The position numbers were made by a program, and so were the translations under genes. Below are positions 2,260 through 45,681 of a stretch of DNA of 64,000 nucleotides, piece by piece (positions within the stretch are counted from its first letter, which is position 1; every line of letters begins with the position of its first letter). The stretch is from the sequence record MN871447.1, one strand, 5' to 3'. Under the pieces are notes generated by a model. The model was not told the DNA's origin. It saw only the letters and a program-made list of their open reading frames with translations, and ran no database searches.

Positions 2260-2317
2260 TTTCTTTTCCTCTAAGCTTAGTTATTCAGAAAGGTCTTTCC
2301 TTTCCTTCTTCACCTTG

Positions 2318-2338
2318 GCTATATATACATCAAAAAAA
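2318..2338 (-). promoter_or_regulatory. Putative early (virion RNAP) promoter
   Basis: Minus strand TTTTTTTGATGTATATATAGC; resembles the phiKZ early motif TATATTAC and recurs at other operon heads. Confidence 0.65.
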
Positions 2339-2399
2339 CTGCATTTCATTCTCTTAGAAAGTTTTTATGTTACCCATTCTAATTTTGAAGGACACTATT

Positions 2400-3653
2400 G
2401 TGGAAATCAAAAACCTTTTTGACGATCGTTTTAAGAACGTCGTTTACGATAGTCGCTTTGCCAGGGATGTCGCTGTTTTCACGAAGACCTTCGAAAACAA
2501 AGGCGAACATGCAAACTTCTTTGGTAGCGGTCTACTCGGTACCGTTAGGATTCGTTGGACAAACACTGAAACCAACGGGTTCTTTGATGACATTTTAAAA
2601 ATCGACCCCGATGACCTGAAAGCTGACATCGACGAACTGGATTGCATCGATCCAAGTCATATCGTGACTACGGACGCCTTTAACTTGATGATCGTCTACT
2701 GCGTCCATCGTGCGATGACCAGTGGTAAACTCTCAGCGGTACAACGAAAAGAAACCGCGATTAACCTGTTAAGAATTCTCCACTTTAAATTCATCTGCGG
2801 GATCATCACCCGTTACTTCCCGCATGGAACAGACGTACAGATCGCACTGCGAACGTATGAGGCCATGACTAACCGCTTCGACCTCAAGATCTACAAGACT
2901 TGGGGTAAACTCATTACGGCACGCGCCCAGTCAATTATTGAGCCTCACGGCATCCACGCGAAAACGATCCAGACCTTCACAGACGACGACGCTGTCAAGT
3001 ACATGCTCTCGGATATCCAGACCCGTATTCGAACCGTGATCAAAACGTTAACGGCGCTCTATTACCAGGTCAGAGAAAACGATGGTCGAGTTATCTCGGT
3101 CTCCAGTATGGTTGAGGTCGAGGGTAACCTCGAGCTGCGAGACGTTAAACGTGCCTTCCCGAAATACCGGCGTTACCTCTTTGAACAAATGACTGACCCG
3201 GCTAGTTTTATACGTTTGGAGTTAGTGGATATTCTGACAAAGAATGCCCCTTCGCAGAAAAAAGCGTTAATTGCCACGTTGCAATATACCAGCTTGCATG
3301 TCATTAACCCGGAAACGTTATTTAACACCAACCGTGGGAAAGAAGTTAAGCAGAGTAAAGAAACGCGTCAATTGGTTGAGTTTACGGAAAGAACGCTCGA
3401 ATATACTTTCGACTTTATTCACGGTAAGGGAATCAACCCACGCAACCTCGTCGAGTTAATCGGCAGCATCAAAGCGGTATTGAACGCCTCCCGTAACAAA
3501 GAACCGGAGGTCATGTACCTCAGAACCGAAGGCGATAAGATTGTGCGTGCAGCCACCGGTAAACGCGAACCTACGCCAGTCTCTGCGGAACGAACATCGT
3601 TTATCCTGTATTTGATCCTGCGTACCCTGACAATGAACTACTACCAAAATTAA
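2400..3653 (+). CDS. Jumbo-phage hypothetical protein on the late strand
   Basis: Track ORF 2367..3653; GAAGGA RBS points to an in-frame GTG at 2400; TATG at 2366-2369 upstream. Confidence 0.75.
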   Translation: MEIKNLFDDRFKNVVYDSRFARDVAVFTKTFENKGEHANFFGSGLLGTVRIRWTNTETNGFFDDILKIDPDDLKADIDELDCIDPSHIVTTDAFNLMIVYCVHRAMTSGKLSAVQRKETAINLLRILHFKFICGIITRYFPHGTDVQIALRTYEAMTNRFDLKIYKTWGKLITARAQSIIEPHGIHAKTIQTFTDDDAVKYMLSDIQTRIRTVIKTLTALYYQVRENDGRVISVSSMVEVEGNLELRDVKRAFPKYRRYLFEQMTDPASFIRLELVDILTKNAPSQKKALIATLQYTSLHVINPETLFNTNRGKEVKQSKETRQLVEFTERTLEYTFDFIHGKGINPRNLVELIGSIKAVLNASRNKEPEVMYLRTEGDKIVRAATGKREPTPVSAERTSFILYLILRTLTMNYYQN

Positions 3654-3660
3654 ACCAAAA

Positions 3661-3687
3661 AAAAGAGAGGGGTAACCCTCTCTTTTT
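3661..3687. terminator. Bidirectional intrinsic terminator
   Basis: AAAGAGAGGG-GTAA-CCCTCTCTTT with A and T tracts, between convergent genes. Confidence 0.85.
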
Positions 3688-3696
3688 ATATTTTCG

Positions 3697-4743
3697 TTAT
3701 AACCCGATTTGTTTCGCCAGTCGGCAATAACCACGATAGAACGCGTCGATCAGAAGATTCTCGAGAAGCGGAATGGAGGCGATACTCTGTCCAAAGACGT
3801 TGTAGTTCCAGGTGACGTGTTTGCGTACCGCACAGGTGTTCTCGGGTCGTGGGCCTTTCACCATATAGGCAATATCACCTACGCTGGAAGTTAATACCCA
3901 ACGCCCCTGATCTTCCCGGTATTCGACGTCCGTGATAAAGCGATCGGTTTTAAACTCTTCTTCGCTCAACGGTGAACCGATGATATCTTCCACTGCTTTT
4001 CGCATGTAAGAATCAATCAGCGGGATTTTCTCGACGTTTCCGTCGATATGGTAACCAAACCCCTTACCGAGTATTGACCCTACGTAGAAGCCTTCACAGG
4101 TGTCTTTATCGTTGGATCGATTAATGAGCTTTAGAACAAGGTCAGTTGTGCTGTCAAAGAACAGGGCAACGTTCGGGAGAAACTGGTATTCACCGCGGCG
4201 TTGACAAACCACTTTGTGCGCCCAGCTTAATTCGAAGTGTTCCCGCATGTACAGGATAAAATCTTCGCCCAGTTGTTTCTGCCAGGTACGGCCGTAAAAG
4301 TCACCGGTCCACGTACTCTTGTCGTCGGCCATGGTTCCGACTGCGATCGGGCGACCATTCATCAACAACGTCCGCTGCATGACATGAATTTTAAAACGAC
4401 AGTTGAGCATAAACCGTGCTCGCGCTTTCTGACCAATAAACCCTTGGAAAGCGTGTTGGATCGCCAGGAAACTAAACGGGCTTTTCGTTTCCTGAGTGAA
4501 ATGATACCGCGTAGTATCGCCGCCTTCGGTAACGAAGACAAGGTGTTTCATTTCTAAGGTAGGGTTAGTGCTAAACCGTAAAACAATATTGTCGTCCTTG
4601 TCCGTAAAGATAAATCCGTTTTCGTTACGATAACCAAAAAGACGATCCTTTTTACTGATCTCCAAAACTCCTTCGTAGTGAAAATCAGTCCCTGTTTTCT
4701 TATCGTAAACGGTACTGTAAACAAACGTTTCTATCGTTGCCAT
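3697..4743 (-). CDS. Hypothetical protein
   Basis: 348-aa ORF, AAGGAG RBS. Confidence 0.85.
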   Translation of the reverse strand: MATIETFVYSTVYDKKTGTDFHYEGVLEISKKDRLFGYRNENGFIFTDKDDNIVLRFSTNPTLEMKHLVFVTEGGDTTRYHFTQETKSPFSFLAIQHAFQGFIGQKARARFMLNCRFKIHVMQRTLLMNGRPIAVGTMADDKSTWTGDFYGRTWQKQLGEDFILYMREHFELSWAHKVVCQRRGEYQFLPNVALFFDSTTDLVLKLINRSNDKDTCEGFYVGSILGKGFGYHIDGNVEKIPLIDSYMRKAVEDIIGSPLSEEEFKTDRFITDVEYREDQGRWVLTSSVGDIAYMVKGPRPENTCAVRKHVTWNYNVFGQSIASIPLLENLLIDAFYRGYCRLAKQIGL

Positions 4744-4772
4744 GTCGTTCTCCTTTTAGTGTGGATAATAAA

Positions 4773-4802
4773 AAGAATGTCAGCAATAACGCCGACATTC
4801 TG
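4773..4802 (-). terminator. Terminator-like hairpin
   Basis: AGAATGTCGGC-GTTATT-GCTGACATTCT followed by TTTT on the minus strand. Confidence 0.65.
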
Positions 4803-4845
4803 TTGCGTATTTCAATAGAGTGATATATTCGTCTATTGTTTTCGA

Positions 4846-19785: not shown

Positions 19786-20208
19786 TTAGCTCCGTGTGAA
19801 AATGTCTACCCCAAAGAATCCTGGGGCGTCTTTGTAACTGTCACCCAACTTCCAATAGTCATTGAAGGCGCGGCGTTTAAGGGTTATCACCCCTTCGTAT
19901 TCGATCAAGGTTTTATCCGTAATGGCGATATCAGCTTTGATCCCTTTATCGGTCAGTCTGAAATTACCGATGAAGTGAGAAGGCGTCACGATCTTTCTAA
20001 AACGTGCGAAGAATTCGTTAGTATTTTCCCAAGCGAGTTTAGTTAATTGAGGATTAAGTTCACCCTCAAGAACTTGTCTGGTTTTAAACGCCCTTGATAA
20101 CCGTTCGATATCGGCAGCGCGCAGGTAGTTCGGTAAGGGGAGATAAATATTAACTAGTTTACTAACATTAGCCGGTTTAAACACGTTGAATACCCTTTCA
20201 TGAAACAA
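19786..20208 (-). CDS. Hypothetical protein, possible degenerate prohead-protease-like fold
   Basis: GEL..P..., SHFIGNF, LKRRAF, GVDIF pattern. Confidence 0.5.
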   Translation of the reverse strand: MFHERVFNVFKPANVSKLVNIYLPLPNYLRAADIERLSRAFKTRQVLEGELNPQLTKLAWENTNEFFARFRKIVTPSHFIGNFRLTDKGIKADIAITDKTLIEYEGVITLKRRAFNDYWKLGDSYKDAPGFFGVDIFTRS

Positions 20209-20213
20209 AACAA

Positions 20214-20234
20214 ATAAGGGCGAAAACGCCCTTA
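20214..20234 (-). terminator. Intrinsic terminator
   Basis: AAGGGCG-TTTT-CGCCCTT followed by ATTTGTTTTGTTT on the minus strand. Confidence 0.75.
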
Positions 20235-20237
20235 GAA

Positions 20238-20405
20238 TTAAATTTTACATGCCCCGCCTTCGCAGTCATCGCTGGCTTCGATTTCGGGTTGTTCTTCGAT
20301 AAACGCTTCGGCTTTCGCTAACGCCGATTCCGCTTCTTCTTCGCTCAGAGTGAATGAATCAAAATCCAGACTTTCGTCTTTCTTTTCAGGGGTGGTTTGT
20401 GACAT
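20238..20405 (-). CDS. 55-aa acidic peptide ending in an NrdA-like redox tail (not in track)
   Basis: AAGGA RBS; MSQTTPEKKDESLDFDSFTLSEEEAESALAKAEAFIEEQPEIEASDDCEGGACKI; terminators on both sides. Confidence 0.85.
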   Translation of the reverse strand: MSQTTPEKKDESLDFDSFTLSEEEAESALAKAEAFIEEQPEIEASDDCEGGACKI

Positions 20406-20484
20406 GGTAACGCTATCCTTTCTTTATTCTAGGCGGCTTGCCTCAAAGAAAGACAGAATAAACTTAAAAAAGAAAAAGATCTAG

Positions 20485-20512
20485 GGGTGGAGAGGGTTTA
20501 CCCTCTCCACCC
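20485..20512 (-). terminator. Intrinsic terminator
   Basis: GGGTGGAGAGGG-TTTA-CCCTCTCCACCC with a T-tract on the minus strand. Confidence 0.85.
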
Positions 20513-20518
20513 ACTTGT

Positions 20519-20989
20519 TTAGTCGAGATAGAAGCAATTACCGCCTTTATTTTCGGCGACGATTTTCTTGAGCCCGTTGGTTGAGAAAACAACGAAGGTC
20601 TCCGGATGATCTTGTACGTAAACCTTAACGGTTTTTGCTTTGGTTTTCTTAACGCCTTCGAAGAACAAGCGCCAGTTACTTGCCCCAACGGTAGAAGCAG
20701 GAGAGATCATCTGGTACTTCTGACCGGCCATTTCGATAACCAGCGCGTAGCGATCATCATCGCTGGAAAGCGAGTTGCCGTTAGTACCGTTCAGAAACAG
20801 CGCTTGAACCGGCCATTGGTCGCCAGTATCGCGGCAAGAGAATGCGAGCGAAAAACCGTCGCTGTTTTCGGTGTAGAATTCCAGAGTACCCTGCTGATAA
20901 GATTCGGTCCAATTATTGACGATGGCCATGGCATTGAAGGACGCGATAGAGGACAGGGCGATGAGTGAAGCAGCAATGAATTTTTTCAT
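20519..20989 (-). CDS. Exported hypothetical protein
   Basis: Signal peptide MKKFIAASLIALSSIASFNAMA; two Cys. Confidence 0.8.
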   Translation of the reverse strand: MKKFIAASLIALSSIASFNAMAIVNNWTESYQQGTLEFYTENSDGFSLAFSCRDTGDQWPVQALFLNGTNGNSLSSDDDRYALVIEMAGQKYQMISPASTVGASNWRLFFEGVKKTKAKTVKVYVQDHPETFVVFSTNGLKKIVAENKGGNCFYLD

Positions 20990-21053
20990 GGGATAGACCT
21001 TATTAAGTTAATGTAAATAGATAGTTGAACGACAAGGAAACTGCGTCAGTGGA

Positions 21054-21362
21054 CTAGTACCAGTAATTACGGGAATGAAACGATTCTCTTGCTACCGCTT
21101 CTCTTGTTTTCTGATAAACGAGACCTTCGAAGACAGCGCGCATGATCCAGAAAGCGACATGACTGATCAGGTAGCCGATTTTACTTAAGAAACAAGTCCA
21201 ATCACGGAGTTTTCTTATCGAGCGACCTTTCCAGGAATTATCGTAAAGGACTTCTGGTGTTGCGCACTTTGCAGTTAACTTTTTGTTAGCGATGTAGGTT
21301 AAGAAAGTGATCATCGCCAGGACAGCAAAAGTAACAACAGAAATGAACAGATAGAATTCCAT
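21054..21362 (-). CDS. Membrane protein
   Basis: N-terminal TM helix plus a second hydrophobic segment; GAGG RBS. Confidence 0.75.
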   Translation of the reverse strand: MEFYLFISVVTFAVLAMITFLTYIANKKLTAKCATPEVLYDNSWKGRSIRKLRDWTCFLSKIGYLISHVAFWIMRAVFEGLVYQKTREAVARESFHSRNYWY

Positions 21363-21382
21363 GGAGTAGTCCTCGGTTTGTC

Positions 21383-21688
21383 TTAAAGTGGTTGGTAGTC
21401 AGCATCATCAAATTTGTCGTGCCACGTGCGGCGGTTCTTGCCGGACACGCGATGGCGGTTACGATGACGTTTGTGTTTTTCTTTTTGTCTTTCCGTTGGT
21501 TCACCGTAGAAAAGAACATCGTTAACAGCAGGTTCTTCGTTAACAATTTCTTCAGTACCACAAACTGCTTCGGTCGTTACCTCTTCGGTAACGACGTCAG
21601 CGGCTGTATTTTGAGTACGCGAAGTAAAGAGGTAACCAATTACAAAAGAGACAATGAAAATAACAATGAAAAGTAGCGCCGTAAACAT
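21383..21688 (-). CDS. Membrane-anchored protein with acidic then basic tail
   Basis: N-terminal TM; EEVTTE..EEIVNEE then KEKHKRHRNRHR. Confidence 0.75.
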   Translation of the reverse strand: MFTALLFIVIFIVSFVIGYLFTSRTQNTAADVVTEEVTTEAVCGTEEIVNEEPAVNDVLFYGEPTERQKEKHKRHRNRHRVSGKNRRTWHDKFDDADYQPL

Positions 21689-21717
21689 AGATACACCTTT
21701 TGGTTAAGAAGATAGCC

Positions 21718-22317
21718 TCACGAGAGGACATGTCCCATCTCGTCGAGTCCTGTTTCTTTATACGTATTAAATTTTTCAGTACGGTCTTTAGTGCAATATT
21801 TTCCTTCTCTCCTTAAATTATTACGTTCGTTACGTTTAGCCATAAGGAGTTCGCGGAAGGCCAAGAGACTAAAGTTAGAAACAATAATACTGAGATTAAC
21901 TAGTAGAATGCTCGCGGAGATAATTATTCCCACAGGGTGTCTGTTAGTAATACAAGTCAAAAGACCAATTATACTTGTACCAGTAGTTATTGATAAAATA
22001 AAACCGTATTTTTTCAAAATGCGAGTGACGAACGATTTAGTGAGTATTGTACGAAAGAATTTAATGTCCGAACTGGTCATCTTACTCCGATGTTTTAACA
22101 GACATTTAGACCATACTCGTAACTTGTAAGTGATGAATTCCGCCCATTCTTCGTTGGAGCAGTCTTGATTTATTTTATCAAAAAAATCAATGACTTCTCT
22201 TACTTGACCGACCACGTTTAAAACTTTACTAAGTTGAGCAATGCCAGATTCCCACATTTTACGCTCTTCGCTTTTATTTTTATTATTTTTCGAACCATTT
22301 TCTTTTTTAGAAGTCAT
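21718..22317 (-). CDS. AT-rich two-TM membrane protein
   Basis: 199 aa, two hydrophobic segments, AAGGA RBS. Confidence 0.7.
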   Translation of the reverse strand: MTSKKENGSKNNKNKSEERKMWESGIAQLSKVLNVVGQVREVIDFFDKINQDCSNEEWAEFITYKLRVWSKCLLKHRSKMTSSDIKFFRTILTKSFVTRILKKYGFILSITTGTSIIGLLTCITNRHPVGIIISASILLVNLSIIVSNFSLLAFRELLMAKRNERNNLRREGKYCTKDRTEKFNTYKETGLDEMGHVLS

Positions 22318-22335
22318 TTTTATTTCCTTTATAAA

Positions 22336-22623
22336 TTAATTATTTTTTTTTGATGTATTCAAACTACCATAAAACATCAAACCGATGATTCCGGTAAGGA
22401 TAGTTAAAGTTAACAGTTCGATGTTGAAAATAACTGCCCCAATAATAGAGAGGATGAAAATGGCTGAAATGACAGCATAAAGTACTTTAGTATCTTTATT
22501 ACTCTTACCTTTTTCTTCTTCGGTTTTTGCATTCTTGATGGCCAATTTGTTCATTCCAATGGCCGTCCAAAGAACAAAACTTATAACGAAGGTTAATGCA
22601 ATAATGATGATGGAAGTTAACAT
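22336..22623 (-). CDS. Three-TM membrane protein
   Basis: 95 aa, strongly hydrophobic, AAGGA RBS. Confidence 0.75.
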   Translation of the reverse strand: MLTSIIIIALTFVISFVLWTAIGMNKLAIKNAKTEEEKGKSNKDTKVLYAVISAIFILSIIGAVIFNIELLTLTILTGIIGLMFYGSLNTSKKNN

Positions 22624-22957
22624 ATTTTTTTCCTTTACTTTAAGAGTAGACTTAGACGTGAGAGAGTTGTTTGCGTTATAAGAGTCGCATACGACGATGT
22701 CCAGAACCAGACGGCGAAGCCTGTCATTTGTTCTGCAACTACCGAACCAGTAAGAGGGTTTACTGCTATTGTACCTGAACTCTGATCTTTCCTCGATTTC
22801 GGAAGAGTCAGTAGGTACAACGCCACAGCCTCGATTACAGGTGTCGGGTGGGTAACGAGAAATATCGTCTTATAACGGTTTGAGAGTGTGAGAATTTAAT
22901 TTAGCTTATCGTAAGGCGTTTCCTTCTTATCTCGTGTGCCAAGGGTGAGGTGACGAC
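22624..22957 (-). ncRNA. Candidate structured non-coding RNA
   Basis: 10-bp closing inverted repeat (22674-22683 / 22868-22877) enclosing several hairpins, in a 330-nt gap with no RBS-supported ORF. Confidence 0.45.
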
Positions 22958-23245
22958 TTAAGCGGTTACCGCTGCGTCAGAGACGTCGGTCTCGCCTGCG
23001 TCAGTCGCAGTCTCGCCGTCAGTGGCAGGAGAAATGACGGTTTTGAGGTTGTTGTAGCTATCGTGAATATAGCTGAAGATAACCAAGACCGCAAAAGCGT
23101 AGGCTGCCACTTCCATGGCAGTAGCCATGCAGAACGCGGCGAAGATTGCCAGCGCGGCAACGATCAGGGTGTCGGTGATGAAAGCAAAGATTGCTTTGGT
23201 TTTCTCAGTGAAAGAGAAAGAGAAGAACGCTTTGATTTTTTCCAT
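22958..23245 (-). CDS. Two-TM membrane protein with acidic tail
   Basis: 95 aa; AAAGG RBS; ATDGET/ATDAGET repeat. Confidence 0.8.
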   Translation of the reverse strand: MEKIKAFFSFSFTEKTKAIFAFITDTLIVAALAIFAAFCMATAMEVAAYAFAVLVIFSYIHDSYNNLKTVISPATDGETATDAGETDVSDAAVTA

Positions 23246-23325
23246 GATAATTTACCTTTTGAATTGAATAATTTAACTACGGGTGAGAGTGCACTACTCA
23301 CGCTGTTGAGAGGCAGCGCTTACTA

Positions 23326-23445
23326 CTATTTGACCGCTTTTAAGTAACCCCCTACGGCGACGGCGAAAACGCAGGCCGGGAGTAAAGCCAGGTCAAGAAT
23401 AAGTACCGAGGAAATAATCCCCAGTACCACGAAAGACGTTTTCAT
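23326..23445 (-). CDS. 39-aa hydrophobic peptide (not in track)
   Basis: MKTSFVVLGIISSVLILDLALLPACVFAVAVGGYLKAVK; GGAGG RBS; TAATG overlap with the upstream stop. Confidence 0.7.
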   Translation of the reverse strand: MKTSFVVLGIISSVLILDLALLPACVFAVAVGGYLKAVK

Positions 23446-23615
23446 TACAACGCCTCCGGTGAATGAGTTGCGTTGAAATTGGCTTTGTTAAACTGCTCTT
23501 CTGAAAGCGCTCCAATAACTCCCGCGGCGAACGCTACCAGAACTGCTGGGATGATAGTCAGTTCAAAGAAGGTGCAGATCAGCAGAGTGAGAATTAACGT
23601 GATGAAGTAAGACAT
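23445..23615 (-). CDS. 56-aa hydrophobic peptide (not in track)
   Basis: MSYFITLILTLLICTFFELTIIPAVLVAFAAGVIGALSEEQFNKANFNATHSPEAL; GAGGGAG RBS. Confidence 0.75.
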   Translation of the reverse strand: MSYFITLILTLLICTFFELTIIPAVLVAFAAGVIGALSEEQFNKANFNATHSPEAL

Positions 23616-23630
23616 GATGATTTCTCCCTC

Positions 23631-23789
23631 TTAGGATAAATAGGTAACGGAGACTAACAGAGCGAACGGCGAAACAATATACCAGACGAGCACAGAGACG
23701 AACCCGTAAAGGATGGCCATCGGTAACGATACGCCGAAACAAAGCAATGCAATGAGAGTGACAATTAATAAAAGTATACTTTCTTTCAT
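23631..23789 (-). CDS. 52-aa hydrophobic peptide (not in track)
   Basis: MKESILLLIVTLIALLCFGVSLPMAILYGFVSVLVWYIVSPFALLVSVTYLS; GAGG RBS; first gene after a promoter. Confidence 0.75.
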   Translation of the reverse strand: MKESILLLIVTLIALLCFGVSLPMAILYGFVSVLVWYIVSPFALLVSVTYLS

Positions 23790-23853
23790 TTTACTTTACC
23801 TCTTATTGGTTTAGTTATTTGGAAAAGACTTTTTCCTTTCCTATTTCACCTTA

Positions 23854-23874
23854 GCAATATATACATCAAAAAAA
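23854..23874 (-). promoter_or_regulatory. Putative early promoter
   Basis: Minus strand TTTTTTTGATGTATATATTGC; nearly identical to 2318-2338. Confidence 0.7.
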
Positions 23875-23930: not shown

Positions 23931-24470
23931 ATGAAGAAAATTACGCTTTGGGGACATCCTGTTCCGTTATTGGGCTTCTTGCATTGGCTGAGTTTTTTAT
24001 TGATCTACTTCGCAGCGTTGATCATTTGCATCATTGTCACACCGTTTCTACCGGCCTTTGCGACGAAGGACGGTAAACTACCGAAATGGCTGAAATGGTT
24101 CGACACACCGGACAATAGTTTAGACGGGGATTCCGGTTGGAAAGAGAAACACTCCCTCTGGGTAAAGGTACTCCCTGAATGGGCGCAAACTTACGTCGCC
24201 CGTATCTTTTGGTTATACCGCAATCCATTGTACGGTTTTTCTATTAGCGTGTTAGGTGCACCAAAAGACAAATTCCGTCAACCTGTTTTAGAGGGTAAAG
24301 GGTTTGATGTTAAAGGCACCTATAAGTCCCATTACTGGATGGTCTACTTCATGCGTGACGACCACGTGAAGAAACGCCGGTTTAAGGTTTACATTGGATG
24401 GAAACTGAAAGCAGAAGGATTTGAGAAATACCAGTTTGCATTTCTGATCAACCCGTTCCAAACGCCGTAA
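23931..24470 (+). CDS. Phage membrane protein on the late strand
   Basis: Track 23901..24470, likely ATG 23931; N-terminal TM; WFDTPDNSLDGD and WLYRNPLYGF motifs seen in other phage proteins. Confidence 0.75.
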   Translation: MKKITLWGHPVPLLGFLHWLSFLLIYFAALIICIIVTPFLPAFATKDGKLPKWLKWFDTPDNSLDGDSGWKEKHSLWVKVLPEWAQTYVARIFWLYRNPLYGFSISVLGAPKDKFRQPVLEGKGFDVKGTYKSHYWMVYFMRDDHVKKRRFKVYIGWKLKAEGFEKYQFAFLINPFQTP

Positions 24471-24483
24471 AAGAAACAAAAAA

Positions 24484-24510
24484 AAGAGAGGGCAAACGCC
24501 CTCTCTTTTT
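24484..24510. terminator. Bidirectional terminator
   Basis: AAAGAGAGGGC-AAAC-GCCCTCTCTTT. Confidence 0.85.
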
Positions 24511-24929
24511 TATACGCGTTTTAGCGATTCAATTTCGATTATCGCTTCAATCTCGAAAAACATTCGGACAAAGAAAGTAGCGATAGACAGAATACCTAAT
24601 AAGTACTCATGGTGAACACAGAGCAGAATGAATAGCGCCACAGCCACGATTAAACGCAGCATAACGTTCATCCCGCCAGTGAAAGTCAGATGCTTCTCTA
24701 TTTTTTGGCGAAGTTTACTTTTGTTCTCTGGCGTCAGCGATATTCTTGAGAGGTCAGGGAAGGAGAAGAACTGGAAACCCAGCCAGAGTAAGCGTATTGT
24801 GATCAACGTGATCACCCAGTAAATTACTGCATCCTCTAATAACGGGATTTTCGCAATAATAAGAATAGCCAGGGCGAAGCAGGAGAACAAAGAGAGTATT
24901 TTGGAAAGTAGGGTCAGCGAGTAAAACAT
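24510..24929 (-). CDS. Four-TM membrane protein
   Basis: 139 aa with four hydrophobic segments. Confidence 0.75.
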   Translation of the reverse strand: MFYSLTLLSKILSLFSCFALAILIIAKIPLLEDAVIYWVITLITIRLLWLGFQFFSFPDLSRISLTPENKSKLRQKIEKHLTFTGGMNVMLRLIVAVALFILLCVHHEYLLGILSIATFFVRMFFEIEAIIEIESLKRV

Positions 24930-24996
24930 TTTATATCTTCCTTAACGTTAACGTTTTAGAACGTCTCCGGTTCAGAGAATCGGAGACAGGGGTAGA

Positions 24997-25491
24997 TTAG
25001 TTTTCGCAGGTCAGGACAACTTTGCCCTGGATGTGAGTAGTGCCCAGCGGCATCTCTTGTGCGTCGAGATTGATTTTCGGCGCGATAGCCAGCGTTTTGC
25101 TGTTACCCTGGATCTGCTGATTTTGAGCAGCGGCGGACCACGCGTATTCCTGGTTGTTGATGAATACGGAAGTTTGCGAACGATCGCTGATGGTCATGAG
25201 GTTATCGGCGAAGGCGAAGCGCCCGGTGTTTTGGGTCAGTTTGGCTTCGGTCAGTTTCCAGCTCTGGCGAGCGGTGTTACTTTTCAGTACGAAGTTAACC
25301 GCCTTTTGATTATCGGTACCTTGCTCGCCTTTCAGAAGGATCCCGCCGGTCTGCTGACCATTGGCAAAATCGATCCCACATGACATTTGAGTTTGGGTGT
25401 ATTCTGCATCCCACACCATTTCCTGCGCAGCGAACGCAGTAGAAGACAGAGACAGTACCAGAGCAGCCACAGCGAATTTTACGTTTTTCAT
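24997..25491 (-). CDS. Exported beta-rich protein, fimbrial-subunit-like
   Basis: Signal peptide ending AFA/A; Cys near each end; C-terminal alternating strand IQGKVVLTC; strong codon bias. Confidence 0.6.
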   Translation of the reverse strand: MKNVKFAVAALVLSLSSTAFAAQEMVWDAEYTQTQMSCGIDFANGQQTGGILLKGEQGTDNQKAVNFVLKSNTARQSWKLTEAKLTQNTGRFAFADNLMTISDRSQTSVFINNQEYAWSAAAQNQQIQGNSKTLAIAPKINLDAQEMPLGTTHIQGKVVLTCEN

Positions 25492-25535
25492 TTGTTTTCC
25501 AAAAGTGAGATTGAGTTAAGGTTTTTTACTACAAC

Positions 25536-25940
25536 TTACGGATCGACACGCATCGCACGTTGAGAATCCATTTGCTGATTCTGTTCCATGCGTTCCATTT
25601 CCATCTCTAAACGACGGATCTGTAATTCTTTTTGGCGACGACTAAGATCAGCTAACCGCTCGCAGCTTTCGGCCATCTTATCGTCACCGCCTAAGGGGAT
25701 ACTTATACTAACATACCCGCCTTTATCGTTATCTGCATAACGATACTGACTACCATTATTTCCGTACGCCCCGACGTTAATCGTTGCTTGCGGGCGGCTG
25801 ACCTCACAGCTGATATCACCGTTCTGTACGCGGCCACGGTTTTCAGCTGTGTTGTTCATGATGTAAGGCGCATCGGCAAAAGCCATTGTTGAACAAGCCA
25901 GTGTAACTGCAAAGAGTAAGACTTTATTCAACATGGACAT
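25536..25940 (-). CDS. Exported protein with SISIPLG motif and C-terminal coiled coil
   Basis: Signal peptide ending AFA/D; two mature Cys; RRQKELQIRRLEMEMERMEQ. Confidence 0.7.
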   Translation of the reverse strand: MSMLNKVLLFAVTLACSTMAFADAPYIMNNTAENRGRVQNGDISCEVSRPQATINVGAYGNNGSQYRYADNDKGGYVSISIPLGGDDKMAESCERLADLSRRQKELQIRRLEMEMERMEQNQQMDSQRAMRVDP

Positions 25941-26295
25941 TGAAGCACACCTCGGGTTGGAACTGCACGTTGGGTATTACCTGCATTGCGCAGATAGGGA
26001 CGTATTTCTGTCCATTATCGTGCTGCTGGATAAATTTGTTATTGATGGTCATCGGAAAGGTCGCTCTTTCACCACCGAAAACATATTTTTTGTAGGGGAT
26101 CCCTTTCTTATCCGCAATGACCTTATTCCCAACCCGAAAAACAAAATCACCGGATTCTTTCGTATCGATGTACATCTCAATTTGAGAATAGCCGTCCATG
26201 CCGATAGAGTTAGTTTGGTTAACTGGACCGAAGTAGTGGGCAGAGGCATTCGCCGCAAAGAAGGCAATCCCTATTAAAGCAAAGCGTGGTTTCAT
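25924..26295 (-). CDS. Exported beta-rich protein
   Basis: Signal peptide ending ASA/H; C-terminal ICA...VC pair. Confidence 0.7.
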   Translation of the reverse strand: MKPRFALIGIAFFAANASAHYFGPVNQTNSIGMDGYSQIEMYIDTKESGDFVFRVGNKVIADKKGIPYKKYVFGGERATFPMTINNKFIQQHDNGQKYVPICAMQVIPNVQFQPEVCFNVHVE

Positions 26296-26306
26296 TTTAG
26301 TTTCTC

Positions 26307-26717
26307 TTATTTACGGCGACGTTGATGGTTGTTGTTGAATTTGTTGGCGAGGGTATTAAATGATTCCTTTGAGATTTTATTTTCTTTCAAGGAGCTGATC
26401 TCGACGACATTGCGTTTATCGTTGCAAGGCCATAAAGACTCAATCAATTCTGCGGTGTCGTCTTTTTCAAGACCACGATAAATCTCTTCTAGTATATAGT
26501 AGTCGCAGAAGGCCGCCGCATCTAAAATGAGATTTGACATTTTAGCCCCTTTGAAAGGATACAGCTGACTAGCAACTAATTCGCCGTCTAAAATGTAAAG
26601 CGCCACCGAAATTTTTGGTGTGGTATAAATAGCTTTGACTTTAATCTCTTTAACAGTATAAGAATTTTTATTAATAGCTTTTTGTACGTTTTCGATAGTT
26701 TTCGCAGTCAGTAACAT
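26307..26717 (-). CDS. Hypothetical early protein
   Basis: Track 26307..26726; ATG 26717 after GGAG and an AACTAAAC box. Confidence 0.7.
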   Translation of the reverse strand: MLLTAKTIENVQKAINKNSYTVKEIKVKAIYTTPKISVALYILDGELVASQLYPFKGAKMSNLILDAAAFCDYYILEEIYRGLEKDDTAELIESLWPCNDKRNVVEISSLKENKISKESFNTLANKFNNNHQRRRK

Positions 26718-26784
26718 TAATAGCACTCCAATAGGTTTAGTTATTTTATTTACGGAAAGGTTTTATCTTTCCTAAATCACTGTA

Positions 26785-26806
26785 GCTATATAGATGTTAA
26801 AAAAAT
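26785..26806 (-). promoter_or_regulatory. Putative early promoter
   Basis: Minus strand TTTTTTTAACATCTATATAGC-TACA-GTGA. Confidence 0.6.
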
Positions 26807-26834
26807 TGGAGATGGGTTCATCTCCAATTGTCTG

Positions 26835-27197
26835 TTATTTCGAATAGCTGTTACGAACGGTAGTCAGGTATTGCCCACCATTAGGAAAGTTCCCTTTCCC
26901 GTCGACGTAATCAAATGTGATTTCATGACTAGGAATAGTCGAAAGAAATCCGCGCTGGTTCGCCACGATCAGTTGTTTGATGACGTTTTGAATTCGTTTC
27001 GTCAACACCGTCAATCGAGCATTACCAGGACAAACGTTAGTGTAAATTTCGTTATAACGTTTCCCAATCAGTGACAACCTGGCAGGTGCTCGGAAAAGCA
27101 CGCGCACCCCTTCTTTTTCGTAAATTTCTTTCTCGAGCTCCCACAGACCAAAAGTCTCCATGGTATCCGGTTGTACAGGAACATCTTGCTTAGTCAT
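26835..27197 (-). CDS. Hypothetical protein
   Basis: EIYEKEGVRVLFRAP...VDGKG...TVRNSY; GAGG RBS. Confidence 0.75.
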   Translation of the reverse strand: MTKQDVPVQPDTMETFGLWELEKEIYEKEGVRVLFRAPARLSLIGKRYNEIYTNVCPGNARLTVLTKRIQNVIKQLIVANQRGFLSTIPSHEITFDYVDGKGNFPNGGQYLTTVRNSYSK

Positions 27198-27243
27198 TTT
27201 CTTTCCTCTGAAAAGTAGGCGGGGATTAGCCCCGCCTACTGTG

Positions 27244-27507
27244 TTAGTCTTTTTCTGACAGACCTAATGCAATGTCTGCCTTTTCTCGCGCTACAATTTC
27301 GCTATGGGTAAGCCCGTGCCCTTTACGTTGATGACCGCACATCCAGCAACTACAGTTACAAGGTGTGGTCGCTACACGACCGATAATGCCTTTATCGGTT
27401 TGGGGTTTCATCCCATTAAAATAGACATTGGCGTTCCAATAGTGAGAAACTTTCTTTTTCTTCATAGCACGTTTGAAACGGCGAAAAGCGCGGTCACGAA
27501 TAGCCAT
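27244..27507 (-). CDS. Basic protein with CxCxxC cluster
   Basis: RDRAFRRFKR...TTPCNCSCWMCGHQRK; likely ATG 27507 after GAGGA. Confidence 0.7.
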   Translation of the reverse strand: MAIRDRAFRRFKRAMKKKKVSHYWNANVYFNGMKPQTDKGIIGRVATTPCNCSCWMCGHQRKGHGLTHSEIVAREKADIALGLSEKD

Positions 27508-27591
27508 CGTTTTAAATCCTCTGAGTTCACCCGTAGAGAACATCTCTACGGGCAGAATATGATCTCAGAGTGGCGGTAGTACCGCAGAGCG

Positions 27592-28029
27592 TTAGGCCGC
27601 ATAGGCTTTTTCAACTCCCAATAAAATTTCACCGAGTTTCTCGCCGGAGATATCACCTAACCCGCCAATAAAGGATTGAAGGGTATTGACACCTAATTTG
27701 AGATTGCGAGAAGGCCCAGCCCAGTAGTTAATGGAAAGTGAAATATAAAAACACTCTGGACTGAAGCAAATACCAGTACTTTTTACACCAGGTGTGACAT
27801 GGAACAGAGGAACATACGGCGCTTTATTTTTCTCTGCTCCATTGTCAATGCTACTGTCCGCTGGAAACAGGTCATGAAAATGAATAACAACGGAACGGTC
27901 TTTGGCCTTGACAAACAGCCCGAAATTGATTCGTAGTTTATCATCGCCACTGACCTGAATAAATTCCCCGAAGTCAGCCTTGTTACGTTTGGTCCAAATC
28001 CCTTTACGCCCTTTAAATGTAGTGATCAT
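27592..28029 (-). CDS. Hypothetical protein
   Basis: 145-aa ORF, GAGG RBS. Confidence 0.75.
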   Translation of the reverse strand: MITTFKGRKGIWTKRNKADFGEFIQVSGDDKLRINFGLFVKAKDRSVVIHFHDLFPADSSIDNGAEKNKAPYVPLFHVTPGVKSTGICFSPECFYISLSINYWAGPSRNLKLGVNTLQSFIGGLGDISGEKLGEILLGVEKAYAA

Positions 28030-28032
28030 CTT

Positions 28033-28365
28033 TTATTCCTCCGGCCATTGAATGAGAATGGCGTTACCTGTCCGCCGAGAGTATAACTCAGCTTCTTTGG
28101 ACTTAATACAACGTTGAACATACCCAACAGAATAATCACCGTAGTGCGCGATCTCTTCGTCGCGTATCCCGCGTAAATGTGCTTCGTAAATTCCCGTCTG
28201 ACGGAGATCCATTTGGATAAGTTCACGAAGATGGTATTCTTCCTCACGAAGCGCGTTTAGTGCTTTCTCTACCGAACTTTGAGCGATGATATTTGCTTTA
28301 AGTTCAAAAAGGCGCTGTCTTTGATGAGTAGAAATTGCCTCAGAATCATTTAAAAAGCAGTCCAC
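28033..28365 (-). CDS. Hypothetical protein
   Basis: 110-aa ORF in array. Confidence 0.65.
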   Translation of the reverse strand: MDCFLNDSEAISTHQRQRLFELKANIIAQSSVEKALNALREEEYHLRELIQMDLRQTGIYEAHLRGIRDEEIAHYGDYSVGYVQRCIKSKEAELYSRRTGNAILIQWPEE

Positions 28366-28576
28366 GACAGACCTCCGCTTCTTCAGTGTTCGCTGTCAAA
28401 TGAAAACCGTTAAGGGTGGTCAGATCACAACCCACCACTAACCCTAATCTGGTTATATCGAAAAGGGTATCGAAAATAGGTTCATCGAGATCCGTTACCT
28501 CAACCCCTTCGACCTGCTCTAACTCCGTTTTAATTTTGGCGTTAGCGTACCGCAATAGATTGCCTTCGTACATCAT
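28346..28576 (-). CDS. Hypothetical protein
   Basis: 76-aa ORF, GGAGG RBS, abuts the upstream stop. Confidence 0.65.
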   Translation of the reverse strand: MMYEGNLLRYANAKIKTELEQVEGVEVTDLDEPIFDTLFDITRLGLVVGCDLTTLNGFHLTANTEEAEVCRGLLFK

Positions 28577-28987
28577 TTACCTCCAGCAAACATCGAACGT
28601 GATGATATCAAAACGGTAACTACCGTCTTGATTTCGCTTACGAAGAATTCGCGGGACAAATTCGAAAGGAAGTGTTTCCTTCATCAGCGCCCCCGCTACT
28701 TTCTCGGAACGAATAGGGCTGTAGTTTGTGATACTCGTAATGAGATTCCCTTCACTGTCCCACTTGTAGTTCTTCGTCACAAAGTGACATTGGTCGCGGT
28801 TAACCGTCACATAACGTTGGAAGTCCTCTTTGGACATCGGACCTTTCGGCCTCTCCAATACCCCTAATTCCAAAAACGAGTGTTTACGTTCAAAGAATTT
28901 CCTGACCGCATCCGGGGAGTACTTATCGACATCGTCCTTTTTCAGAATGATTATTTCCCGAATGAATCTGCTTAAATCATTGTTCAT
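28577..28987 (-). CDS. Hypothetical protein, possible degenerate prohead-protease-like fold
   Basis: LGVLERP...HFVTK...FVPR...DIITFDV pattern. Confidence 0.5.
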   Translation of the reverse strand: MNNDLSRFIREIIILKKDDVDKYSPDAVRKFFERKHSFLELGVLERPKGPMSKEDFQRYVTVNRDQCHFVTKNYKWDSEGNLITSITNYSPIRSEKVAGALMKETLPFEFVPRILRKRNQDGSYRFDIITFDVCWR

Positions 28988-29483
28988 TATCGGCCCCTTT
29001 CAGATACCCCGTTAAACGATCAACGTGCGGTTGTACCCACTCTATCGAATCGAACTCGTCGATGTGTTCGGCCACGTAACGGATTTTCTCCGGGATAGGC
29101 TGTTTAAAGTGCTCGAGGAAGAGTTTAGCGAAACTGCACCCCAGGGCATCGATCTCCAGATACCCGTCGATGAGCTCTTCAACGGTTACTTCATTCGCCC
29201 GATCTGCGCTATATTGAGAAAGGAGTTTCTCCAACTCAATACCGTGGGGATTAGCCGTGTCGATAATAACGTCGGAGAGGCTTACAAAAGCATGGTTCCC
29301 GCAATCGTAAAAGATCACCTCATGTCCCCACTGCTTCGCTACCAAACCAATACATACTGCCGCCGTCCCGCAATCCCCGGAGTTAATCCGTTTAATCGCA
29401 TCTTCTTTCGATTCACGGGAAAAATAGACCCGGTAAAAATCAACAAACTTATCAACAAGATTCAGGATTGATTCGGTAGGCAT
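28977..29483 (-). CDS. Putative transglutaminase/papain-like Cys-His-Asp protein
   Basis: GDCGTAA, NHAFV, IIDT in the expected order; likely ATG 29483 after AAGGAG. Confidence 0.5.
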   Translation of the reverse strand: MPTESILNLVDKFVDFYRVYFSRESKEDAIKRINSGDCGTAAVCIGLVAKQWGHEVIFYDCGNHAFVSLSDVIIDTANPHGIELEKLLSQYSADRANEVTVEELIDGYLEIDALGCSFAKLFLEHFKQPIPEKIRYVAEHIDEFDSIEWVQPHVDRLTGYLKGADNEQ

Positions 29484-30156
29484 TTTCAAACTCCTTGCGG
29501 TTGTTATCATCTAAGAAAAATTCCATGGCATCACGGTACCGGTGCCAGCATTGCGTATCACGGAAATGATAGATTTTATCAAGCTCAGTAATACGGTCAG
29601 TGACAAGTTTGTGAAGATGTGCGTAGTAACGTCCTTTCGGAAGAAACTGCGTAAAGATATCTTTTTCCGTGAGCCAAATTTTAAGGAAGGTGACTTCTAT
29701 CCCTTCAACGTCTTTTAGGTTGTCGAGGATATCTGCCAATTTCACCGCCCACGCGTCAGGGTTAGCGGAGTTAAGGAGTTTAGTCGCCTCTAACATCGTT
29801 CGGTCTTTCCGGTTCGCTTGTATGGCTTTAGTTGTGTAGCGATCCGTAACCCAATCAACGAGTTTCAGTGTCTCATCAACCAGTTGGGTGTAATTACCGT
29901 CTATGCTATCAAACGTAAACAGCATAAAACGGAGATCCTCTAAAGAGATCTCGGTATCCTCAACCACGTCATGTAACAGACCTGCGCAGACTACGGTGAT
30001 AGGGTAGTCATTTTCCTTGAGCGTTTCACTGACGGAAAACGGATGGATGTAATAAGGTTTGTTAGACCCTTTTCTTTTTTGCCCGGTGGCAGAATGCGTT
30101 GACATCGCCACCAAATTACAAACAGAATATAATTTTCTTTCCGCTTCAGTTTTCAA
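29452..30156 (-). CDS. HD-domain RelA/SpoT-type hydrolase (Mesh1/SAH-like)
   Basis: H..GQKRK...PYYIHP, AGLLHDVVEDT, VKLADILDN. Confidence 0.85.
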   Translation of the reverse strand: MKTEAERKLYSVCNLVAMSTHSATGQKRKGSNKPYYIHPFSVSETLKENDYPITVVCAGLLHDVVEDTEISLEDLRFMLFTFDSIDGNYTQLVDETLKLVDWVTDRYTTKAIQANRKDRTMLEATKLLNSANPDAWAVKLADILDNLKDVEGIEVTFLKIWLTEKDIFTQFLPKGRYYAHLHKLVTDRITELDKIYHFRDTQCWHRYRDAMEFFLDDNNRKEFENAYRINPESC

Positions 30157-30188
30157 TCCTAAGGCCCTCTAGGTAAGCTTTCAATAAA

Positions 30189-30212
30189 GTGATATAGTCT
30201 TCAAATAAATTC
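30189..30212 (-). promoter_or_regulatory. Putative early promoter, second subtype
   Basis: Minus strand AATTTATTTGAAGACTATATCACTTTATTG; matches the 38939 site. Confidence 0.6.
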
Positions 30213-38893: not shown

Positions 38894-38938
38894 TGTTTAA
38901 TCACCTTATTTTTTGTTAATGATGTTAACTGCAATAGG

Positions 38939-38962
38939 GTGATATAGTTTTCAAACTAATTG
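38939..38962 (-). promoter_or_regulatory. Putative early promoter, second subtype
   Basis: Minus strand AATTAGTTTGAAAACTATATCACCCTATTG. Confidence 0.6.
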
Positions 38963-44047: not shown

Positions 44048-44061
44048 GTTTATAACACCAA

Positions 44062-44388
44062 TTAATGGAAAGAATTAGAGAGCCAGAAACGACATTCGTC
44101 TTGCTGCGTTGCTTCTAGTTTGGTTTTCATCTCAGTGAAACATTTGATGTCGTCACGATGTTTACTGGCGATTTCAGGATCAAGAACTTCTGCCAGTTCC
44201 GCCAGAAAAGTTAAACTCTGAATCGTACGATCAAGGAGTTCAATGGCGCGACTCGTTAACAGAGGACGTTCAATGAGGTCATGCTCGTCTTTAATCGAAA
44301 AGAGCGACTGGAAGACTGTTGAGAGTTCGTTGATTGTAGCGTCGTTATCAGCAAATGACATATTGATTCTCCTTTTATTAAAAAACAA
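44062..44388 (-). CDS. Hypothetical protein
   Basis: Helical ORF; likely start at MSFADND after AGGAG. Confidence 0.7.
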   Translation of the reverse strand: MFFNKRRINMSFADNDATINELSTVFQSLFSIKDEHDLIERPLLTSRAIELLDRTIQSLTFLAELAEVLDPEIASKHRDDIKCFTEMKTKLEATQQDECRFWLSNSFH

Positions 44389-44426
44389 AATAAGAGGAGA
44401 GGGTTACCTCCCCTCTCCCAGCGGTA

Positions 44427-44894
44427 TTATTTCTTTAAAATGTCACTACCGTTAAAGTAGAGTCTCAGTCCAGCGAGACCGAGTTTCTCTACGGCTTCAT
44501 CAACGCCCACCGCCAGTCTTTCAATGACGGTATGTTCCCTACCGCGTAAGAACATAGGCTCGAAGTCATCACTGAAGACACCGTCCAGATGAATCAACAT
44601 CCAAATCTCACCGGTCTCTTTCATACAGACTTCCGACTTACCCAGGTCATTGATGCGCTCAAGACCCAGATCACGTAATATCAGGATAGCTGAACCGCAT
44701 TCATCGCCGAGAATCCAATTATCTTCATCGAAATTTTCTAACTCTTCAAGCAGAACCCCGGCATGATGAAGGACGATATCGTTAACGGCATTGACCATTG
44801 CCGCCGCAGCGTCACGGAATTTCTGTTCGCGTTCTTCACGGCTGTATTTCAGATTAGCAAAAACGCTTAAAGCAGTAGATTTTAAAAATGACAT
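44427..44894 (-). CDS. Hypothetical protein
   Basis: Track start 45101 overlaps the upstream gene; ATG 44894 has a GAGG RBS and an AACTAAAC box. Confidence 0.75.
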   Translation of the reverse strand: MSFLKSTALSVFANLKYSREEREQKFRDAAAAMVNAVNDIVLHHAGVLLEELENFDEDNWILGDECGSAILILRDLGLERINDLGKSEVCMKETGEIWMLIHLDGVFSDDFEPMFLRGREHTVIERLAVGVDEAVEKLGLAGLRLYFNGSDILKK

Positions 44895-44961
44895 TTGACT
44901 TTCCTCTATAAGTTTAGTTGTATAAATGGCAGAGGAACTCCTCTGCCAGGTAAGTGCTTGA

Positions 44962-45594
44962 TTAGTTAAAGAACGGCGCCATGTTCGCACTGAATTTAAT
45001 ATCTTCAGCGTGTTTGAATTTGATCGTTGTAACAGTGATCGGTTCATAGTCGGCCATGTTAACAATCGACAATGTTTTATCGAGGTAGATAACGTTGTCA
45101 CGAATGATCATGTGATAATGCTCACGTTCCCCGCTTTGTGTTTTAGCTACTTCGTCAATGAAGATATCCGTTTCCGGATTATAACTGAAGTCGCTCGGCA
45201 TAACTTTCACAGGGTTCTGTTCGCGATAACGCTTAACATTAAGGATAACCTCTTCTACTCCGTAGACGATAGAAAGAATGTCCATGTCTTCTTCGAAGTC
45301 TGCGAGTTCATCAGGGGTAAGAATCGTGCTGTCGAGGTATTCGCGTTTGTACGGCCAGTTGGCCAGGAATTCTGGCTCGTCGCACATCGTGGAAAACGCC
45401 TCTCCGTTTTCGCGGTACAGCCAAAAACGATCACCTGTACTCATACGAGTTTCCACGATTAAATCTGCCGTTTCCGGGATAGAATTTTCAAAATCGAAGC
45501 GCGGCGTGAATGTGGCGAAATTCTCGGACAGGGTGTCTGGTGTTAAATCGAAGTTAGCGTCTTTAGCGAAAACAGTAATAGCGAAAGTAGTCAT
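44962..45594 (-). CDS. Acidic early protein
   Basis: 210 aa; first gene after the promoter at 45661; AAGG RBS plus AACTAAAC box. Confidence 0.8.
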   Translation of the reverse strand: MTTFAITVFAKDANFDLTPDTLSENFATFTPRFDFENSIPETADLIVETRMSTGDRFWLYRENGEAFSTMCDEPEFLANWPYKREYLDSTILTPDELADFEEDMDILSIVYGVEEVILNVKRYREQNPVKVMPSDFSYNPETDIFIDEVAKTQSGEREHYHMIIRDNVIYLDKTLSIVNMADYEPITVTTIKFKHAEDIKFSANMAPFFN

Positions 45595-45660
45595 GATATA
45601 TTCCTTATTTGTTTAGTTAAAAGTATGATAAAAGGGTTATTCTTTTCTTTTATCACTCGG

Positions 45661-45681
45661 GCAATATATACATGAAAAAAA
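45661..45681 (-). promoter_or_regulatory. Putative early promoter
   Basis: Minus strand TTTTTTTCATGTATATATTGC-CCGA-GTGA. Confidence 0.7.

Follow-up and report, generated by a model that had tools for sequence, protein, structure and literature searches.

A repeated promoter–leader cassette with a candidate 5'-stabilising RNA hairpin among the early promoters of jumbo phage KpLz_1_41

Introduction

How the first genes of nucleus-forming jumbo phages are expressed is an active question, and the leader elements of transcripts made by their virion polymerases have scarcely been looked at. A 64,000-nucleotide (nt) stretch (hereafter, the window; bases 1-64000) of the 305,006-bp genome of Serratia phage KpLz_1_41 (MN871447.1), a phage isolated on Klebsiella pneumoniae, raises this question in a concrete form: at four minus-strand sites, the same arrangement of a T tract, an AT-rich core, the tetranucleotide GTGA, a hairpin, a conserved box and a ribosome-binding site (RBS) precedes a start codon. 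Which of these parts belong to the promoter, which to the leader RNA, and what might the latter do? Our reading comprises a subclass of early promoters, a repeated cassette, a 5'-stabilising hairpin and a separate box; taken as a whole, we consider it tentative, with a chance of being correct that falls slightly short of even.

KpLz_1_41 is a nucleus-forming, phiKZ-like jumbo phage, because it encodes homologues of the RNA polymerase (RNAP) subunits beta and beta' (PF00562 match with E 3e-11; PHROG RNAP beta families with E 1e-144 to 1e-192, encoded directly 3' of the early promoters at genome positions 275331 and 288796) as well as a nuclear shell protein (phrog_4795, E 1e-44), and because tubulin and shell proteins have been reported for its relative phiKp24 (PMC8386662). 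The expected reader of the early genes of such phages is a virion-packaged RNA polymerase (PMC7598289). The close kin of KpLz_1_41 form the Siatvirus group (KpLz-2_45 and others), and its farther kin are the Klebsiella phages vB_KpM_FBKp24 (that is, phiKp24; FBKp24 below) and Centimanus. All genome-wide scans described here were performed on the full 305-kb public record of KpLz_1_41.

Four copies of one promoter–leader cassette

The layout described in an earlier reading of the window from sequence alone (the sequence-only reading) is present at all four minus-strand sites: a T7 tract, the core TATATWGC, 4 nt, GTGA, a hairpin, the box TAACTAA(A/G)C and an RBS follow one another in this order ahead of a start codon. 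The pattern TATATWGC-N(3-6)-GTGA is matched four times, in each case on the minus strand, whereas shuffles lead one to expect 0.03 matches. The promoter of site 1 spans 2310-2338 (T7 tract at 2338-2332, core TATATAGC at 2325-2318, GTGA at 2313-2310, putative +1 at the G in position 2311) and is followed by a hairpin at 2287-2305 (GGAAAGG/CCUUUCU, 7 bp including one G-U pair, -7.1 kcal/mol), the box TAACTAAGC at 2275-2283, an RBS and the ATG at 2259 of a 225-amino-acid open reading frame (ORF; 1582-2259). At site 2, the promoter at 23846-23874 (T7 tract 23874-23868, core TATATTGC 23861-23854, GTGA 23849-23846, putative +1 at 23847) precedes a hairpin at 23821-23841 (GGAAAGGA/UCUUUUCC, 8 bp including one G-U pair, -8.7 kcal/mol) and the box TAACTAAAC at 23809-23817, after which come an RBS and the ATG at 23789 of an ORF for a membrane-like protein of 52 amino acids (aa).

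Site 3 begins with an intrinsic terminator (26829-26804) and extends through the promoter to 26777 (T tract 26805-26799, core TATATAGC 26792-26785, GTGA 26780-26777, putative +1 at 26778); its hairpin at 26748-26777, starting from +2, combines GGAAAG/CUUUCC with the extension AUUUA/UAAAU (-8.2 kcal/mol), and the box TAACTAAAC at 26735-26743 is followed by an RBS and the ATG at 26717. The fourth promoter occupies 45653-45681 (T7 tract 45681-45675, core TATATTGC 45668-45661, GTGA 45656-45653, putative +1 at 45654), with a hairpin at 45627-45654 (GAUAAAAG/CUUUUAUC, 8 bp with a 12-nt loop, from +1) in a register unlike that of sites 1-3, the box TAACTAAAC at 45611-45619, an RBS and the ATG at 45594 of a 210-aa ORF. 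Three of the four sites are located at divergent gene junctions; site 3 lies 3' of the intrinsic terminator, the T tail of which is also the T tract of the promoter.

A covariance model of the leader recovered exactly these four copies from the 305-kb genome, with the next match at E 2.4, and Rfam 15 gave 0 matches at the gathering score in the whole window. By BLAST, the cassette is restricted to this clade, in which it occupies three places per genome. The leaders of the four sites and of their relatives comprise 15 distinct variants that align as a single homologous family, with the consensus GAAnAAGGAAAGGAAAGACCTTTCTnAATAACTAAAC. As far as sequence comparison goes, it is near certain that the four sites are copies of one homologous promoter–leader cassette. 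The copies keep their syntenic positions across lineages, and the leader is retained where the downstream proteins are 58-65% identical. At site 1 (1582-2338 and its orthologs), the promoter and leader are near-identical across sub-lineages, the first downstream protein being only 58-65% identical.

Metagenome contigs from two runs change to another leader or flank exactly at the cassette of site 2 (23831-23903), and one contig carries the site 2 promoter fused to a site 1-type leader; these switches reflect either recombination in nature, taking place at the repeated cassettes, or assemblies that broke at repeats. In FBKp24, the first gene driven by the copy at 139761 differs from the one driven by its Centimanus counterpart, which is consistent with the contig switches at the cassette.

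A subclass of the phiKZ-type early promoters

The GTGA-bearing promoter is not confined to the four cassettes of the sequence-only reading. Nine TATATNNC-N4-GTGA sites are found in the whole genome, and the wider form TATATNRC-N6-G (TATATNRC-N3-A-(G/T/A)-T-G) is present at about 25 sites genome-wide, on the minus strand. The latter figure derives from 27 minus-strand matches and 1 plus-strand match of the regular expression TATAT[ACT][AGT]C-N3-D-D-T-G, less a few intragenic look-alikes. The same expression yields 29 matches on one strand and 0 on the other in FBKp24, and 26 and 0 in Centimanus; the matches lie on a single strand and gene order is syntenic, though the records are circularly permuted. 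The site at 288796 drives the gene for the nuclear shell protein together with an RNAP beta-like gene, and the one at 275331 drives two RNAP beta-like genes, all of which must be expressed early.

In about 25 sites, TATATNRC is located at -14 to -7 relative to a conserved G; a highly conserved AT-rich element, some 10 nt in length and about 10 nt upstream of the start, has been stated for all such phages (PMC7598289). At -27 to -21 the four sites carry the T7 tract, where other members of the family have a TTT-N-A-A-type sequence, and the T-rich part of the phiKZ early motif is likewise positioned upstream of -19 (PMC8244752). Core, T-rich part and split RNAP genes all match the phiKZ-type early promoters of virion RNAPs, so that this proposal of the sequence-only reading is upheld, and the four sites appear, with near certainty, to form a subclass of the approximately 25 phiKZ-type early promoters for a virion-packaged multisubunit RNAP.

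The early promoters of phiKZ (TATATTAC), 201phi2-1, OBP, N1M2 and AR9 (AAATATATATTAT) share with those of KpLz_1_41 the T-rich upstream part, the AT-rich core and the G located 7 nt after the core, often within GTG(A), along with a strict strand bias, a location ahead of early operons, among them those with RNAP genes, and a copy number of about 25-30 per genome. Unlike in those phages, the core here is mostly TATATCAC, and the four sites stand out by TATATWGC and an unusually long T7 tract. The extra conserved leader cassette of the four sites is unreported for phiKZ, 201phi2-1, OBP, N1M2 and AR9.

GTGA had been taken for a leader element separate from the promoter. This view can be abandoned, given that the motif is part of the published consensus, which in related jumbo phages ends in ...TATATTAY-N4-GTG(WA), the predicted early promoters being ...KATATTATYWAAGTGWA in N1M2, ...ATATTATYWWADTG in OBP and ...TATATTACDWHDGTG in 201phi2-1 (PMC7058600), and that it is also found 3' of the phiKZ early promoters, where N4-NTG comes next after those TATATTAC sites that have the AT-rich upstream part. 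Judged by this comparison, the promoter takes in the T tract, the TATATWGC core and GTGA, the last of which is no separate leader element. The conserved G (of GTG, TTG or ATG) falls 7 nt past the core in every family member and likewise in phiKZ. AR9 early promoters have the form AAATATATATTAT-(6N)-G+1, and in phiKZ and phiR1-37 a conserved start is situated 6 nt 3' of the consensus (PMC5312081). From the identical spacing of the conserved G in KpLz_1_41 and AR9, we infer that the second G of GTGA is the transcription start, and every start site given here was inferred likewise.

Two other interpretations of the region were rejected. A leader peptide extending from GTG(A) to the TAA of the box is in frame at site 1 only, sites 2 and 3 reaching a stop after 2 codons and site 4 reading through the box; furthermore, its GTG would fall 5' of the putative start. 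Host sigma-70 promoters, sought as -35/-10 hexamers with 16-18 nt spacing, number 19 against 16.0 +/- 4.9 in shuffles, which is not above chance, and the sigma-70 score of site 2 is only 9/12.

The leader hairpin

When the complete leaders are folded, each hairpin, including that of site 1, persists as an independent 5' module. Three of the four are significant in comparison with dinucleotide shuffles, namely, those of site 2 (z -2.93, 1/200 shuffles as good), site 3 (z -3.71, 1/200) and site 4 (z -4.28, 0/200); the value for site 1 is -0.60 (58/200). Among the leader variants, sense folds are on average 1.4 kcal/mol more stable than antisense folds, with a gap of up to 5 kcal/mol (for example, -8.7 versus -4.5 at site 2, or -5.4 versus -0.1), and the stems of many variants close only by G-U pairs. 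Such dependence on G-U pairing, combined with the advantage of the sense strand, argues against a pure DNA palindrome. The loops vary while the stems stay throughout the 15-leader alignment. We conclude from the predicted folds that the hairpin in the leader RNA is real. Relative to the putative +1, its stem begins at +1 in site 4, at +2 in site 3 and at +7 in sites 1 and 2.

The sequence-only reading had reported stems that differ in sequence between the four leaders and preserve pairing by covariation. What stands of this description is a 5'-proximal stem-loop followed by the conserved box and the RBS at each site; the covariation does not. Once aligned, sites 1-3 share one GGAAAGG/CCUUUCY stem, the apparent differences having arisen from a repeated purine tract that was read in different registers. 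In the alignment of the 15 leaders, the helix is 87.6% paired with 0 two-sided changes, compared to 88.8% after partner shuffling and 73-77% after a slide by one column. Covariation among the four copies, three of which have identical stems, is thus unsupported, and sequence conservation alone explains their pairing. Other registers are used by site 4, where GAUAAAAG/CUUUUAUC pairs from +1, and by the FBKp24 copy of site 3, where GAA(C)AAGG/CCUUUUC does so from +1. These two look like independent ways to retain a hairpin.

In the leaders of other early promoters, for which orthologs from two or three lineages per site were compared, hairpins are retained by true compensatory changes. In the leader of the shell-protein gene at 288796, GAAGGUA/UACCUUC alternates with GAAGAUA/UAUCUUC, that is, a compensatory change from G-C to A-U. 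The orthologs of site 275331 display a U-A versus C-G compensatory change, those of site 4827 show one compensatory change against FBKp24 in an outer pair, A-U versus G-C, and at site 144315 the stem is largely replaced (AAGGUAGA/UCUACCUU versus AGGGAAAG/CUUUCCCU). At site 64621, the stem is invariant and the loops are GUU, CUA and UUA.

With significance defined as a fold better than 95% of dinucleotide shuffles, 7 of 25 early leaders of KpLz_1_41 (binomial p 1.7e-4) and 11 of 26 in FBKp24 (p 1.9e-8) are structured. The hairpins are confined to leaders of at least 52 nt, in which they are situated 5' of an ordinary leader of 25-30 nt, and there are none in leaders of 43 nt or shorter. In phiKZ, by contrast, the early leaders show no enrichment in 5' structure (3 of 21 significant, mean z -0.1), and inspection by eye of distant jumbo contigs that carry this promoter revealed neither a shared hairpin nor a shared box. 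The trait therefore belongs to this clade, and these two results led us to reject the idea that leaders of virion-RNAP transcripts carry such a hairpin in general; equally, the hairpin cannot serve as the general mark of virion-RNAP transcripts that the sequence-only reading had envisaged, with significant 5' structure in only 7/25 leaders here and 3/21 in phiKZ.

Individual leaders outside the four-copy family have features of their own. Some phiKZ early leaders start with a hairpin at +1 (sites 45568, 172370 and 266882). The family member at 4774-4827 in the window (TATATCAC-N6-G, minus strand, +1 at 4813), which is directly 3' of the terminase gene and has no box, carries a 12-bp leader hairpin followed by a U tract (4801-4774; -17 kcal/mol, z -5.36) that is conserved in FBKp24; this element looks like an attenuator or a terminator 3' of a promoter. 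The loops of the early-leader hairpins at 206143 in the KpLz_1_41 genome and at 304713 in FBKp24, the latter comprising two tandem hairpins (GGAUC...GAUCC and GACC...GGUC), share CUUGAGAAAG, possibly a loop motif that is repeated.

The box

AACTAA and the final C of the box are invariant in 15 of 15 leader variants, and its flanks differ, as does its spacing from the RBS; between box and start codon there are about 12 to 40 nt. Folding of the full leaders leaves the box single-stranded at sites 3 and 4, and part of it is paired at sites 1 and 2. Genome-wide, AACTAA(A/G)C is not over-represented (about 6 copies are expected per strand); about 8 of its 12 minus-strand copies are located 10-45 nt 5' of a start codon, and the box recurs 5' of internal operon genes. 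Three copies in the window, all on the minus strand, lack a promoter. One of these, TAACTAAAC at 777-769, lies 6 nt 3' of a GC-rich intergenic hairpin (about 807-784; whole element 769-807) and is followed by an RBS and ATG; another, CAACTAAAC at 44920-44912, is located 7 nt 3' of the GC-rich intergenic hairpin GGCAGAGGA/CCUCUGCC (whole element 44912-44947) and again precedes an RBS and ATG; the third, TAACTAAAC at 55673-55681, has neither promoter nor hairpin, and its TAA terminates the ORF that lies upstream. The promoter-less copies are not conserved in FBKp24 or Centimanus. At 94759 in the genome, the box is found behind another early promoter, without a hairpin.

Given the copies without promoter and the copy behind a hairpin-less promoter, the box is, by its distribution, a separate, sequence-specific element 5' of the RBS. 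Its role is possibly that of a translation enhancer or of an operator for an RNA-binding protein, which is a guess. We rejected two further assignments. As a promoter for the non-virion RNAP, the box is unlike the YTATG/T-3ATG+1 late motif and is limited to leaders on the early strand. As for pairing with a phage tRNA, the plus-strand sequence AACTAAAC at 246168 resembled a tRNA arm; ARAGORN finds no tRNA there.

Possible functions of the leader

Promoter and GTGA motif are known from earlier work; any function of the leader is a proposal. Bacterial and phage mRNAs may carry a 5' stabiliser of the ompA type, in which a small stem-loop lies close to the 5' end or directly at it and the RBS is part of the unstructured leader that comes next; such 5'-terminal stems begin about 0-4 nt from the end. 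The leaders described here resemble this arrangement in that a hairpin is added before a leader of normal length, and differ from it by the 6 unpaired nt at the putative 5' ends of sites 1 and 2 and the short, AU-rich stems. In the mechanism that we propose, the virion-packaged multisubunit RNAP would read the four cassettes from the second G of GTGA, and the purine-rich stretch at the 5' end of the transcript would pair with the downstream CCUUUC-type stretch, the resulting stem-loop having 6-11 bp, a folding energy of -6 to -9 kcal/mol and a distance of 0-6 nt from the 5' end. At a stage when the phage has yet to make protective proteins, this hairpin would guard its first messages against the 5'-end-dependent decay that RppH and RNase E bring about.

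We favour a 5' stabiliser because of the position of the hairpin at the 5' end, the bias toward the RNA strand, the add-on architecture and the conservation in orthologs. Several results weigh against it. The hairpin of site 1 is no better than dinucleotide shuffles, no two-sided compensatory change occurs among the four copies, and, with the start as placed here, the 6 unpaired 5' nt at sites 1 and 2 exceed what classic 5' stabilisers tolerate; the phiKZ early leaders are not enriched in 5' structure, no hairpin or box shared by the distant jumbo contigs was discernible by eye, and the role assigned to the box remains guesswork. On balance, that the leader hairpin stabilises the 5' ends of the first phage messages seems possible and still rather doubtful.

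Hairpins close to a promoter are also known from antitermination. Lambda-type nut sites and the leaders of rrn operons combine boxA and boxB, that is, a hairpin beside a short conserved single-stranded box. The cassette is similar in pairing a hairpin with a box close to the promoter, and dissimilar in that no boxA-like CGCUCUUUA is present and that the hairpin precedes the box; moreover, the polymerase here would be a phage enzyme, in a compartment thought to exclude host factors.

Among the competing explanations, translation control, with the purine-rich hairpin and the single-stranded TAACTAAAC box acting jointly as a standby or enhancer platform for ribosomes, or as a site at which a RegA-like repressor would later turn off translation of these early messages, draws its appeal from the box: this is the most conserved element of the leader (AACTAA and the final C being invariant among the 15 variants), folding leaves it free at sites 3 and 4, most of its minus-strand copies (about 8/12) precede start codons at 10-45 nt, and it recurs before internal operon genes. 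The hairpin, however, is located 25-35 nt 5' of an RBS that it does not sequester, the distance from box to start codon is variable, from about 12 to 40 nt, and the promoter-less boxes are not conserved in FBKp24 and Centimanus, and we regard this explanation as unlikely. Slightly less probable still is a DNA operator, GGAAAGG-N5-CCTTTCC at +7 to +25, bound by a dimeric phage regulator that would shut off or boost the four promoters. The sequence conservation of both arms without covariation is what a protein site would show, the location just 3' of the start would suit a roadblock repressor, and there are only four copies, all with one promoter subclass; yet many copies pair only through G-U, a mismatch in DNA, with sense folds better by up to 5 kcal/mol, the hairpins of site 4 and of FBKp24 site 3 differ in both register and sequence, and other early leaders retain their hairpins by compensatory changes.

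That the leader has no function at all, the cassette being a remnant of duplication or gene conversion and the pairing arising incidentally because a pyrimidine tract comes after a purine tract, we rate as improbable to nearly the same extent. The absence of covariation among the copies, the 73-77% pairing left after a one-column slide, the failure of site 1 to beat shuffles and the metagenome contigs that end at the cassette or change there to another leader type, suggesting recombination, would all be explained in this way; this does not sit well with the retention of the leader in syntenic copies whose downstream proteins are 58-65% identical, with stems that are kept while loops differ, or with the three of four hairpins that surpass dinucleotide shuffles. 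Attenuation, whereby the hairpins would cause premature termination and release short RNAs from the 5' untranslated region (UTR), as in many phiKZ leaders, appears very unlikely. It has precedents in the 17 candidate RNAs produced by premature termination in phiKZ 5' UTRs (PMC10914365) and in the 12-bp hairpin with a U tract of family member 4827; against it, the four stems are weak and AU-rich (-6 to -9 kcal/mol), no U tract follows the hairpins of sites 1-3, and a terminator scan of 20000-30000 left those of sites 2 and 3 unflagged. In phiKZ and 201phi2-1, a TTAT or U tail accompanies the terminator hairpins at which the 5' UTR RNAs end (PMC10914365, PMC11512511); the cassette shares with these RNAs a structure directly 3' of the promoter, and its hairpins lack a tail of this sort and fall outside the terminator pattern. 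We give as little credence to the idea that the hairpin and the AACUAAAC box jointly form a recognition tag that marks the four immediate-early operons for special handling in nucleus-forming Klebsiella jumbo phages; if true, a phage or virion protein recognising the tag could let these messages leave the early infection vesicle selectively or favour their loading onto ribosomes.

Other promoters in the window

Besides the four cassettes and the member at 4774-4827, the window holds three further members of the early promoter family, all on the minus strand: TATATCAC-N6-G sites at 30182-30196, where the leader is short and lacks a significant hairpin, and at 38932-38946, likewise without a significant hairpin, and a weaker pattern match, TATATCTC-N6-G, at 56113-56127. 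Fusions of a terminator with a promoter, in which the T tail is the T-rich upstream part of the promoter, are found at 26804-26829 (minus strand) in the window and at genome positions 81623, 180514 and 249084. On the plus strand, YTATG is located 20-70 nt 5' of the starts of structural genes at 12492, 15557, 32352, 39010 and 45735, and resembles the phiKZ late promoter motif T-3ATG+1 (PMC7598289). At 2367 and 23901, YTATG coincides with the annotated ATG, and these two starts may therefore be mis-called.

Implications

The analysis yields a map of the early promoters of the phiKp24/Siatvirus group, with about 25 sites and a putative start nucleotide for each. Unlike in phiKZ, approximately 30-40% of the early leaders in this clade start with conserved hairpins. 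The four-copy cassette with its invariant 8-nt box constitutes a directly testable unit and, being compact and portable, may serve as an expression part in phage engineering.

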